Below are positions 3,074 to 7,209 of a stretch of DNA of 64,000 nt, one piece after another. The first letter of the stretch is position 1; each line of letters begins with the position of its first letter. A program made the position numbers and the translations under genes. Below the pieces are notes generated by a model. The model saw only the letters and a program-made list of their open reading frames with translations, made no database searches and had not been told where the DNA came from. The stretch covers positions 148,268-212,267 of the forward strand of contig NW_005434575.1 of NCBI RefSeq assembly GCF_000315625.1. Direction: 5' to 3'. Origin of the DNA: Guillardia theta CCMP2712 (lineage: Eukaryota > Protista > Cryptophyta).

Positions 3074-3681
3074 TAGATGAAACCCCCTTAGATGTCGAGG
3101 CTTGTGAAACCGTCTACCGTAGTACTGTCGAGTCCACTTACCTGAACCGTCAGTCATCTTTCTAGTATCATGACCCGTCACTCAGCGGTGATCCGGGCCG
3201 GGCCGCCGGTGGTATCAGGCTAGCAGTCAGGCTAGGCGGCTTCCGGGAACTTCCACGCCAATTTAAAAAACTCGGACACCAGTATATATACTTTCTTTAA
3301 ACTCTGAAAGTTTTCTGTGATTTTTATTGTTTAGCACCATAAACCACATAAATGGACCACCCCCCCCCCCCGGGGCAAAGGGGGGTTCGCCGGTTAACCT
3401 TTAATCGACAAAAGGACTCCCGAAGGAGTCCTGGACCAGCATGACAGGGGTCATTGATAGGTTTCAATCACCCATCCAATGGGGCTGTATGAGGGTCTTA
3501 AAAAAGAAAAAAAAATCTTCCCGCCTTCCCCGGAGTCCGACGGAAAGTTTGTGGCTGCTCGTTTCATCTTCCCGCCATTACAGAGTTTGCGGTCCGACAA
3601 TACACTGAAACGATGGTAATGAAAAAAATGTAGCGACTACCTGCTATCTAACATGGTTTCGCCAGACTAACATACTATAAC

Positions 3682-5874
3682 ATGCCGAGGAAGAGAAAAC
3701 GAATTACAGATGATTCAGACAACGGTCAAGAAATAAGTTATTCAAAACCATTCACGAGAGTCGTCAAATGTGGGTTATACTCGAGACTCAAGGTAGAGAA
3801 CAGATCGATTTTAGACGTGATCGACAGATGGGTATTACATATCAGTCAGATCACATCAAGAGGCAGTATGATATTCAACTGTTTTCTGATATGGGGCAGG
3901 GATACAGGGAATTTACGATATGTAGTGGATGAAATCAAGAGAGCCAAATCGACCTTTTTCTGGAATGTTTTTACACTTGGAATGGAACAACATAGCCGTA
4001 CAGATAACAAGTATCCAACTCTACAACGTTTCTGGTCAGAGAAAAGACATCTTTTCGTTGATTTATGTAGAATTCGAGGAGACTCGCAAGCTATTGTATT
4101 CGCTGCAAATCAATATGGAACGAATTTCTACCAAGACCTGAAAGCAAATTTTACAAACCGATTGGAAAAGTTCATTGCCGAATTCTGCAAAGGAGAGTTA
4201 CATATTAACCATCAGCAAAGGCCTGTTTATGTGGAGTCGACCTCTCCCGGAGNNNNNNNNNNNNNNNNNNNNNNNNNNNNNNNNNNNNNNNNNNNNNNNN
4301 NNNNNNNNNNNNNNNNNNNNNNNNNNNNNNNNNNNNNNNNNNNNNNNNNNNNTTCGTACGCCCCGATGTGCTGCTCGTACGATCTCTTCCTTACGAGTTG
4401 AGACAGAAGTGTGTTAACAGGAATAATTCACAGCAGATAGGAACCTTCATCGACCATATGAAACAACTAATTGGATTATCGGGGGACGAAGATCTTTTTA
4501 GTTTCAAATATGACAAATTTGATCATAGGTTGCAGAAAAATCTGTTTGAGATAATCGAGACACACATGTTCATGTTGAAGTTCTTCGAAGATCGTGGTCT
4601 CTCGAAAAAAACATTCAAGGCAGCACCAATGTCGAAATTCGGCAGAAAACATCTAACAATCGATAATGATGTGATGTATTACATTTTGAAAGAAGCGAAC
4701 AGTTTGAAACCGGGAGAAGATAAAAAATCGTTCATGAGAATAGATCAAACTTTGGAGAACTCTAAGAATTTCAGAAGGATTTTCGACTGTTCGAATCTGT
4801 TCAGAGATCAGAGAGAGGAGATTACAAGTATCACGACAGACGGTGTATCGGTTTGTTTTCGCTTCACGTTAATTGTCAAAACAATCGATGGACTCGAACA
4901 GGAACCTTCATTGCGCACTACCAAATGGCTTGCCGATAGAAAAAGGGCTGAACGGAAATCGGCGAAGAAGATATCAATATCATACAAAGTATTACATGAA
5001 AATTCAGAATACCAAAGAGAGATCGAAGAATGTAAAAATTGCCCAAGGGTAATTGCGATCGACCCTGGGAGGAGCGTCATTATATCGGCCGTCGAACAAT
5101 TCAGAGATGATCAACAAATAATCAGAAAAAGATTTCAGTTTTCGAGAAAACAATATTATCACGAGTCACATCTGAATCGCAATAAAAAGAAAAGAAAGAC
5201 GTGGGATCAAGATATTCAATCGACATTGCACTATCTCAAGGGGTTCTCGAGTAAGTCTGGCGGCAGTCTATCAAGATTCGAAGACTATCTTCTTGCAGTT
5301 ACAAGTCATTGGGAGGAGTTAACTTCGCATTATTCAAAGCGAAAATACGCCAGGATGAAATTCGACATCTACATTTCGAAACGAAAGTCAGTCGACAGGT
5401 TTATCCGTACAATGAAAGGAAAGGGAGAAATAGAACCTGTTATCGCATATGGAAATGCAAGGTTCCCGTCTACAGGACGTCGAGGAGAAAGGCCTGTACC
5501 GGTCAGGTGGATAAGAAGAAGATTCGAGAATCACTACAGAGTCGTAGATGTTGACGAATACCGTACTACCAAGTGCTGTAACGATTGTGGTTCTGAGCTC
5601 GATGTGCTTCGACGGATTGAAAATACAGGGAAAGAACCAGACGAGACCTGTAGGTTGAAAACAAGGAAAAGTGAAGTACGAGGATTGAAATTTTGCAGAT
5701 CATCGAGGTAATGTCAAGTTTTGTATACTCCTGTAATTCACCTTTTCATCTAACTGTTATCGTGACAGCTGTAAAGGAAAGCCGATCAAATCCAGGGACT
5801 TGAATGCTGCACTGAATATACTCACTTGTTTCAATGTGTTTCCTGAAAGACCGAATCACCTACGTCGCCCCTGA
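3682..5874 (+). CDS. Fanzor1: Fanzor1 / TnpB-family RNA-guided RuvC endonuclease, about 700 aa (interrupted by N gap 4253-4352; intron 5708-5768)
   Basis: N-terminal NLS-like PRKRKR and TRVVKCGL. RuvC-I VIAIDPG (D codon 5061), VIAYGNARF, RuvC-II VDEYRTTKCC (E codon 5556), Zn finger CCNDC...CRSSSC. After splicing, RuvC-III SRDLNAALNI (D codon 5797), then RPNHLRRP and a stop at 5872-5874. Confidence 0.9.
4253..4352. other. Assembly gap (100 N) inside the Fanzor ORF
   Basis: Run of N; accounts for the apparent frame change between ORFs 3682 and 4368. Confidence 1.
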
Positions 5875-6088
5875 GGTGAATTCAATGATTGTTGTCGCCC
5901 CCTCCCTACCCAGACTGCGTCCCTCGGGACTCGATGCCTAATTCCCTGCCTGCCTGCCTGCCCGGTGCCTGCCTCCATTATGATCCGATGTTTACGACAT
6001 GTGATCATTGAAGTGACTGACTGGCATCATTTGGTAGGATTCATGTAAGGCTCCAACAACATCCGAAGACAATTTGGCAAAAAAAAAC

Positions 6089-6266
6089 AACTGCCGTTGT
6101 ATGACGGAGAGTCGCGGCTCTCAATCATACGACGGCAGTTCTGTGCGAAAACTTAGTTCGTCGTTCAGAAGGGTATTCACATATTCCGTCACATCATGAG
6201 GGAGAGTACCCGTGGTAGATAGATTCGTGGCGTTTATCTATTAAAGTTAGGCCCGGAATTAAAAAT
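6089..6266 (+). ncRNA. Candidate Fanzor omegaRNA (scaffold plus 3' flank-encoded guide); boundaries approximate
   Basis: Consecutive stems: 6089-6140 (16-bp arm with one G-U plus inner GAGAG/CTCTC), 6139-6170, 6171-6178/6204-6211 enclosing 6185-6203, and 6216-6240. They end at the right inverted repeat, the position expected for TnpB/Fanzor guide RNAs. Confidence 0.6.
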
Positions 6267-7209
6267 TCAGTGAGTCCAAAGGCTTGGGGTGGTAACAGGG
6301 AAGGGAAGGGGTAGGGTAGGATACCAATTTTTGAGTACAGAACCTGTGTTGATGAAGGCATCTGGATACGGTAGGGGTAGTCAAGGGGGAAAAGGGGGGT
6401 ACAAGATAGCAGAGTCAGTAATGGTACCTCAAACTCTGAGATATGGAAAGTAACGGGTAGGGAAACAAAAGAGGGGGTACAGTAGTCATTCGTCCAAGAA
6501 AAGAGAGCACCGGTAGTATGATATTATGCTAAGACGGGGGGTGACTCAAGTTCAAAGGGGGTACTGGGTGATACAAGAGCTGATTGCAGCAGGGTCGTCG
6601 GATCACAAAAGCTAATCCCGGCATCCGGTCGCCAGGGAATGGGGGAATGAAGAGAAGGAGGGCAGGGAGGGAGGTAGGAGGGAGATGAGGAGAGAGGGAG
6701 AGTAAGGAGGAGAGAAGAGTAGAATAGAGTAGAGGAGGTGAGAGGTGAGAGGGCAGAAGCCGATACGGTGAAGGGAGAGTGTGGAGGAGATGAGTGAAGG
6801 TCTACGATTCAAGTTAGATGTGATGGACAGTGAGCGAAGGATGGTTCAAAAAAGGGAGAAGAAATGTAGCAACAGTAGGGAGAACAAGACAGAGTTGTGG
6901 GTAGTCTGGTTCAGCAAGTTTGTTGTTTGTGGATGGCAGTATCAGCCTACCGATTAAGGAAGTGAGATACATGAGGTACATGATAGGACTTTACACAATT
7001 CCTGATGTAAGAAGATATCATATCATGATGCCATATCTTGTAAAGGTTGTGTCAACCGATAATGCATTGTATGCTGTGAGAGCCTAGTCTAATCAGAAAT
7101 GGTAGCAAGTTGTATCGAACTCTTTTGCTGTACTATTTCGTTCATACTGATAACAATTGTTTGGCAGGTTATCGAGTTGTCTGGCTTCCATGGGAGCGTG
7201 ATCTAAGCA

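Follow-up and report, generated by a model that had tools for sequence, protein, structure and literature searches.

Does the AT-rich block near the start of this 64,000-nt window of the Guillardia theta CCMP2712 genome (the window being the whole stretch of DNA analysed here) encode an RNA-guided nuclease, and does it do so as a complete element? An earlier note on the same DNA had taken positions 3399-6266 for an apparently complete Fanzor1 locus, with a RuvC protein, an omegaRNA and element ends. With a probability of roughly 85%, we read positions 3394-6243 as one copy of a young, multi-copy, non-autonomous element, hereafter family A, whose sole gene is of the Fanzor1 class, whose structured tail is likely an omegaRNA and whose internal gap is probably an artefact. 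All coordinates are those of the whole window, and the element lies on the + strand. The genome searched (G000) comprised 87.1 Mb in 669 contigs, the window corresponding to contig 99; further copies were fetched as loci L002-L011, and independent sequencing runs are named X1, X2, X8 and X23.

Membership of the Fanzor1 class was established because sequence, fold and catalytic residues agreed. A single-sequence phmmer search against the PDB matched the predicted protein to SpuFz1 of Spizellomyces punctatus (E 8.9e-7), aligning its IDPGR and DEYRT motifs to the catalytic residues D383 and E541. A profile of 33 homologues matched PpFz1 (E 9e-34), SpuFz1 (E 1.5e-33, over profile positions 6-586 of 598) and GtFz1 of G. 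theta (E 1.6e-21), all three being proteins of solved structure (SpuFz1, PDB 8GKH and 9CEU-9CEZ; GtFz1, PDB 9CER-9CET). D417 of family A aligned to SpuFz1 D383 and E582 to E541, and D642, within RD.NAA, fell on the NRDM motif of SpuFz1. The three catalytic columns D, E and D were invariant or nearly so among 33-50 homologues, as was RD.NAA.NI, nearly invariant in the family alignment. Pfam, run on pieces of the window, gave only a sub-threshold match to the Cas12f1-like TNB domain (E 0.042), uninformative alone; the same domain was found by Pfam in 30 of the 33 family members. An exhaustive HMMER search returned 1388 cluster representatives at E <= 1e-3, from which the 33 profile members were drawn, an earlier word-seeded homologue search having yielded three proteins only, and the nearest homologue (36% identity) came from the cryptophyte Hanusia phi.

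The fold pointed the same way. An AlphaFold2 model of the 632-amino-acid (aa) exon-1 product, which omits the last 34 aa encoded by exon 2, had a mean predicted local distance difference test score (pLDDT) of 83.2 and a predicted template modelling (pTM) score of 0.83. Its seven best PDB matches were all Fanzor1 proteins: SpuFz1 with template modelling (TM) scores of 0.63/0.65 (E 2e-19), PpFz1 with 0.61 and GtFz1 with 0.53/0.55. The next structural family was Cas12, at TM scores of at most 0.29, with Cas12h next at 0.19. By these matches the model has the Fanzor1 fold, which is defined by a WED domain, an enlarged helical REC lobe, a RuvC domain split by a helical insertion and a TNB zinc ribbon. 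By sequence comparison and modelling, the family A gene is thus a Fanzor1-class, predicted RNA-guided RuvC endonuclease related to TnpB and Cas12, as the earlier note had proposed; the PDB sequence match, the 33-homologue profile search and the fold match all bear this out. TnpB of IS200/IS605 (ISDra2) and Cas12f were remote fold matches to the model (TM 0.2-0.3). They have a RuvC and zinc-ribbon core in common with family A, and the guide RNA of TnpB is encoded at the right end of its element, the target-adjacent motif (TAM) being the target motif of the transposon. They differ in being prokaryotic, in lacking an intron or a nuclear localisation signal (NLS), in a much smaller REC lobe and in having a Y1 transposase as partner.

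Fanzor1 proteins are already known, structurally solved and studied in G. theta, and family A is a new, uncharacterised paralogue among them. GtFz1 (XP_005840014, GUITHDRAFT_101477) comes from the same genome, has the same Fanzor1 fold and has a right end that likewise finishes ...TTAA. A pairwise BLASTP comparison with family A aligned only 51 aa, at 35% identity, and the third catalytic position of GtFz1 is N658 (PMC11423790), where family A has the canonical D. We therefore rejected the idea that family A is the GtFz1 orthologue; the suspicion in the earlier note of a distinct paralogue was correct. GtFz1 is also intronless at the zinc-ribbon site, its omegaRNA of ~150 nt overlaps the end of the coding sequence (CDS), and its published locus, as we read it, adjoins a Tc1/mariner-like open reading frame (ORF). 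The measured TAM of GtFz1, TTAAN (PMC10432273), resembles the TTAW that brackets family A. The published GtFz1 coordinates (scaffold_7: 894431-896473) yielded a 690-aa ORF at the same place in contig 7, which identifies the genome as that of G. theta CCMP2712, and the GtFz1 protein begins MSNIRIVKRK... The two G. theta loci that Saito et al. described (scaffolds 7 and 348) belong to the GtFz1 type and not to family A, and Guillardia is not mentioned in Bao & Jurka 2013 (PMC3627910). In the Fanzor literature that could be checked, we found no earlier description or assay of family A.

SpuFz1, in turn, ranks first among the structural matches, and its profile match covers nearly the full length. 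In common with family A it has a RuvC triad of the canonical D-E-D type, a TNB domain with a zinc ribbon, a basic peptide at the N terminus and a length of ~640 aa; as we read the published sequence, its omegaRNA also ends in a stem directly before the guide. The two differ in host kingdom and share only ~16% identity in the structural alignment, and SpuFz1 has a CATA TAM and an omegaRNA of ~87 nt, compared with the TTAW ends and the ~206-nt candidate tail of family A. As judged by profile and predicted fold, family A is a lineage separate from GtFz1 and stands closer to SpuFz1 and PpFz1, both of them fungal.

The gene itself had to be redrawn. The earlier note described a single ORF of ~700 aa; we found instead a first exon split by the gap, a missed intron of 61 nt and a short second exon carrying RuvC-III, the intact sister copies encoding 666 aa. 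As the letters stand, the frame from the ATG at 3682 enters a run of 100 N (the N100 gap) at 4253, and another frame is open from 4353 until a TAA at 5709-5711. This in-frame TAA lies at the start of the intron, whose edges read GTAATG... at 5708 and ...GACAG at 5768, and joining 5707 to 5769 keeps the frame via SSSCKGKPIKSRDLNAALNIL... to the stop TGA at 5872-5874. The exact 5707/5769 splice joint was carried by a contig of run X8. Splicing yields an intact 666-aa protein in four sister copies (L002, L003, L004 and L006), which differ pairwise by 3-6 residues and retain all catalytic residues and zinc ligands, while five others (L005, L007, L008, L010 and L011) contain frameshifts or deletions. 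Outside residues 180-200, the window protein is identical to that of L003 except for F201V, which stands beside suspect letters, and Q473H. The motifs named in the earlier note were all present: the catalytic residues are D417 in IDPGR (5061-5063), E582 in DEYRT (5556-5558) and D642 in SRDLNAA (5797-5799), and the CxxC...Cx4C zinc ribbon comprises a CxxC at aa 588-591 (5577-5588) and an intron-split Cx4C at aa 628-633, with C628 at 5694-5696. The GT..AG intron and the N-terminal basic peptide PRKRKR, a putative NLS, are eukaryotic nuclear features. The locus is nevertheless not complete as presented: the window copy has no readable sequence over 4219-4413, and only the four sister copies elsewhere in the genome are shown to be complete.

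The limits of the element followed from its copies. In BLASTN comparisons, similarity to L002-L011 (97-99.8%) began at 3394 for every copy and ended at 6243-6249, and none of the flanks were related, so that at least 10 sister copies replace the limits of 3399-6266 with 3394 and 6243 (Table 1). Sister copies are ~2.72 kb long, the window copy being longer because of its gap region. Genome-wide searches with exact patterns found 16 right ends and 11 left ends of family A, with at least 11 full-length copies, and therefore some copies are 5'-truncated. Read depth over the element exceeded that of unique flank ~15-fold in run X1 and ~11-fold in run X2. A six-frame search of the genome with the protein sequence that follows the gap gave 65 matches, including about a dozen loci with 96-100% identity, older relics at 77-91% and a second family at 48%. 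The AT-rich block was confirmed, with a GC content of 0.31-0.44 compared with 0.57-0.64 upstream. The ORF listing contained no ORF of at least 100 aa inside the element besides the Fanzor gene, in agreement with the earlier statement that there is no transposase in cis. Family A is, on our reading, a young, multi-copy, non-autonomous DNA element of G. theta. Right ends without left ends, from 5'-truncated or decayed copies, were seen on G000 contigs 13, 36, 38, 53 and 1, and recall Fanzor1 elements of the Helitron type, for which one-ended copies have been described.

Table 1. Features of the family A copy in the window, in window coordinates.
Feature	Start	End	Strand	Basis
Whole element (family A)	3394	6243	+	BLASTN against sister copies
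Left TTAW, here TTAA; apparent 4-bp direct repeat or target duplication	3394	3397	+	Pairs with TTA+A at 6241-6244
Subterminal left-end hairpin, perfect 7-bp stem GGACTCC/GGAGTCC, 4-nt loop	3414	3431	+	Kept in 11/11 left ends
CDS first part, aa 1-179, with NLS-like PRKRKR (aa 2-7)	3682	4218	+	Open frame; protein identical to sister L003
Unreliable stretch: 34 letters, N100 gap (4253-4352), 61 letters	4219	4413		Unlike every sister copy
CDS second part, aa ~201-631, with RuvC-I, RuvC-II and first zinc-ribbon half	4414	5707	+	Open frame; 2 aa differ from L003
Spliceosomal intron, 61 nt, GT..AG	5708	5768	+	666-aa frame after splicing in four sisters; X8 contig joint
Exon 2: second zinc-ribbon cysteine, RuvC-III SRDLNAALNIL, stop	5769	5874	+	Frame; family alignment
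Probable intron of the 3' untranslated region (UTR), 162 nt, GT..AG, with variable (CTGC)n microsatellite	5876	6037	+	One X8 contig joint, depth 3.5
Candidate omegaRNA scaffold, four hairpins	6038	6243	+	Folding; right-end position
Flank that would supply the guide, length assumed	6244	6265	+	Guide position in GtFz1 and SpuFz1; each copy has a different flank

The ends bear on how such an element may move. The sequence shared by family A copies opens with TTA(A/T) and closes with TTA, and in nine of the ten copies having both ends the variable fourth letter of the left end, A or T, recurs as the first flank letter beyond the TTA of the right end. This pattern fits a 4-bp TTAW direct repeat, which a DDE-type duplication could leave, as could integration by a recombinase (Crypton or serine-type) at a short shared core. 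The imperfect inverted ends of the earlier note did not hold up as a terminal inverted repeat (TIR): the inverted-repeat search found no convincing TIR, its best match (12/14) lying 7 nt off the left border and borrowing three bases of the right flank. A TIR-bounded cut-and-paste transposon (Tc1/mariner, piggyBac, Sola2 and others) was accordingly rejected, family A having neither a convincing TIR nor a second ORF, and all genomic matches to its left and right ends were Fanzor-only copies. In the empty-site search, matches to the left-flank repeat broke off 4 nt short of the insertion, and the sequence flanking the right end was unique.

The flanks have features of their own. The left flank (3284-3389) belongs to another dispersed repeat with eight other genome matches, mostly at ~80% and two short ones at 98-100%, and ends in a C-run / GGGGCAAAGGGGGGTTCG. 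GC-rich repeats are common beside family A insertions. The first 65 nt beyond the right end, which are GC-rich, are the same in L004 and L009; the left flanks of these two copies differ, and no TTAW is present on the left of L009. The metagenome contigs L034 and L035 carry this right flank too and may be chimeric assemblies across a repeat. The shared flank could reflect a common GC-rich repeat, a co-mobilised flank (3' transduction or homing) or an assembly chimera, and was not used as support. Directly to the right of the element (6280-6800) is a strongly purine- and G-skewed low-complexity tract with a GC skew of up to +0.58 and GGGTAGG and GAGGGAGG motifs.

Whether the window copy could encode the protein depends on the gap. 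As written, its two sides are out of frame, and the upstream frame crosses the N run to a stop at 4399-4401. One contig in each of the three runs X1, X2 and X8 joins 4218 to 4414 through 64 letters in the form of the sisters, and because 537 plus 64 letters place base 4414 at codon position 2, this sister bridge restores a single frame. Opposite window positions 4219-4390, the sisters hold 41 in-frame letters, and window 4391-4413 bears one -1 and one +1 indel relative to them. Neither 4219-4252 nor 4353-4413 matched any of the sister copies, the gap-adjacent letters 4219-4252 (34 nt) and 4353-4390 (38 nt) were found nowhere else in the genome, and the contigs of X1, X2 and X8 gave zero depth on the gap-edge letters. 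In our view the letters at the gap edges probably reflect poor sequence where contigs end, rather than a real disruption.

An alternative is that the window copy is truly broken by an insertion or rearrangement between 4218 and 4414, and is a dead member of a family that is live elsewhere. A real insertion or rearrangement would account for the assembly gap at that place as well, and the letters beside the gap differ from all sisters, with the two indels at 4391-4413; several other family A copies, the five with frameshifts or deletions, are truly decayed, and the run contigs collapse ~15 near-identical copies and may drop a variant held by one of the 15. Against this, the 34 + 38 nt beside the gap are unique in the genome and hence not a known repeat, and they had zero depth in X1, X2 and X8, though the unique right flank of the locus has a depth of 62 in X1. 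The window copy is also as clean as the intact sisters outside 4219-4413, and the frames on either side fit the 64-letter bridge. A broken window copy is therefore somewhat unlikely, and we favour poor sequence at the contig ends.

The highly structured 3' tail described in the earlier note was borne out and ends exactly at the right end of the element, the place expected of an omegaRNA. The region 5875-6265 folded better than its shuffles (z -4.7), and the 206 nt of 6038-6243 had a sense fold of -70.8 kcal/mol (z -5.53; 0/200 shuffles), compared with -56.2 kcal/mol (z -2.67) for the antisense. Its four hairpins include a long hairpin at 6089-6140 and a terminal hairpin (6213-6243) directly adjoining the end of the element. 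Because the stem of the terminal hairpin depends on four G.U pairs, it forms only in sense RNA; the older copy L028 turns one U.G into C-G. A right-end motif, GYCGTTTA..WTA, is common to families A, B and C of this genome, the terminal bases pairing upstream in each, and family A closes with ...GTGGCGTTTATCTATTA. As we read their sequences, the published SpuFz1 and GtFz1 omegaRNAs likewise close a stem directly before the guide, which in both is the DNA directly outside the right end. The segment 5876-6037 upstream of the scaffold is, tentatively, a probable 3'-UTR intron; its (CTGC)n region is greatly expanded or variable in the older copies L028 and L016, with the sequence on either side conserved. 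An Rfam scan of the element matched no family. By analogy with the published systems, 6038-6243 is likely an omegaRNA scaffold that would end at 6243 and take its guide from the flank.

Alternatively, the Fanzor1 protein could be real and its omegaRNA lie elsewhere, overlapping the CDS end, or the tail hairpins could be DNA-level signals for transposition. The omegaRNA of GtFz1 starts inside its CDS. Both ends of family A bear subterminal hairpins without TIRs, comparable to the end hairpins of IS200/IS605 or Helitron2, and the excess of right over left ends (16 to 11) marks 5'-truncated copies, as in one-ended Helitron-type Fanzor1 elements (PMC3627910). The four G.U pairs of the terminal stem and a sense fold 14.6 kcal/mol better than the antisense nevertheless point to RNA, as does the stem closing directly before the guide in both published omegaRNAs, and the roles of RNA scaffold and DNA signal are compatible with each other. 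We regard this alternative as unlikely, and retain the tail as the likely omegaRNA scaffold.

Several observations weigh against our reading of 3394-6243. At the ends, the evidence for a TTAW duplication comes from only nine of ten copies, and the empty-site search for it yielded no empty site. At the gap, the contigs collapse ~15 copies and thus fall short of proving what this copy holds there. In the tail, covariation is minimal, with one compatible change in L028, and the right-end motif GYCGTTTA..WTA was absent downstream of three virus-like relatives (L047-L049, described below). Expression adds to these points. Sense expression depends on one low-depth contig of X8, which is only guessed to be an RNA run; the X8 contigs carry the 5707/5769 joint and the 3'-UTR joint that removes 5876-6037. 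Run X23 consists of raw RNA reads, of which ~6% of the run was read, and gave 98 reads, all between 4132 and 5587 and nearly all in one orientation; it had no reads over 5588-6400, although X23 is a cDNA library and this is not evidence of absence. CT..AC joints at 5063/5302 and 5368/5437 occurred in X23 reads and X8 contigs, and a further one at 5768/5826 in X8 contigs. Such joints are introns of the opposite strand, and part of the RNA is therefore antisense and spliced, within a minus-strand region spanning 4650-5830. Taken together, the data only weakly suggest sense expression of the family A gene. That the nuclease is inert in vivo, as a silenced gene or a passenger, with copies spread only by a trans-acting transposase, would suit the very low sense signal, the antisense spliced transcripts and the lack of a transposase in cis, but seems improbable given four copies that keep the 666-aa frame with 3-6 substitutions between them and intact catalytic and zinc ligands, D, E and D near-invariant across the family, and a Hanusia phi homologue whose protein set has a name resembling that of a transcriptome assembly.

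Family A is not alone in this genome. Family B is represented by a 642-aa intronless ORF, as in L017:337-2265 (G000 contig 26) and its sisters L018-L025 and L027, and comprises at least 10 copies that are 94-99.9% identical. Its protein shares 32% identity with family A over the full length and 48% over the C-terminal ~225 residues, with the same D-E-D triad, and it too is a Fanzor-only element with a related right end (...GTGTCGTTTAGCTAATA, compared with that of family A, ...GTGGCGTTTATCTATTA). Unlike family A, it lacks an intron at the zinc-ribbon site. Its 3' tail is shorter (163 nt), its left end is a different sequence with tandem repeats of ~88 nt close to the 5' end, and it finishes in ATA rather than TTA; its left border is fuzzy, with no clear duplication. 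Further diverged Fanzor1 genes were found at L030 (G000 contig 201), with 40% identity over the C-terminal part, and L026 (contig 72), with 34%, and the tail of L030 ends ...GTCGTTTATAGGTTATA, a right-end motif of the same type.

The nearest relatives outside cryptophytes (33-36% identity) were on the metagenomic contigs L047 (GC 23%), L048 and L049. These are gene-dense and intron-free, with neighbours including PARP, histone-like, dsRBD and YqaJ genes, and from their gene content look like giant-virus contigs. Freshwater, lake and runoff metagenomes (X6, X7, X10-X12 and X16) hold 34-88% of the sampled words of the element; as we take G. theta not to be a freshwater organism, this signal could come from relatives, prey cultures or carry-over.

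If the tail is an omegaRNA, a mechanism like that of GtFz1 can be postulated. The protein-omegaRNA complex would recognise a TTAW-type motif beside DNA matching the guide encoded in the flank, and would then cut the matched DNA, as shown for GtFz1 at its TTAAN TAM. Cutting would help the element to be kept or copied again once an enzyme encoded elsewhere had moved it. The identity of the omegaRNA, the TAM, the cleavage activity and the biological role of family A are all proposed by analogy here. More specifically, and with a little less than even confidence, we suggest that the intact sister copies may encode a currently active Fanzor1 that, unlike GtFz1, has the D-E-D triad, whose TAM, TTAW, is the same as the target duplication of the element, and whose unusually long omegaRNA (~200 nt, four hairpins) may derive from the mRNA 3' UTR after splicing of 5876-6037, which would place the scaffold beside the stop codon.

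Fanzor1 nucleases are compact eukaryotic candidates for genome editing, and to our knowledge only a handful have been characterised. Because family A has a canonical triad, intact and near-identical copies, a defined intron and a sharp right end, the intact sister loci could serve directly for the design of both a guide scaffold and a construct for expression. Our understanding of what Fanzors are is unchanged by family A. It does add a second Fanzor1 lineage to G. theta beside GtFz1, with families B and C also present, so that a single genome harbours several Fanzor1 lineages that have diverged deeply, and the TTAW ends of family A echo the TAM measured for GtFz1. The giant-virus-like nearest relatives outside cryptophytes fit the view that Fanzor elements were spread by viruses. 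G. theta is thereby a natural system in which to compare the divergence of TAMs and omegaRNAs and, if the more specific suggestion above is true, a single alga would carry a second, independent lineage of programmable nuclease that is apparently still mobile, its copies being 97-99.8% identical.

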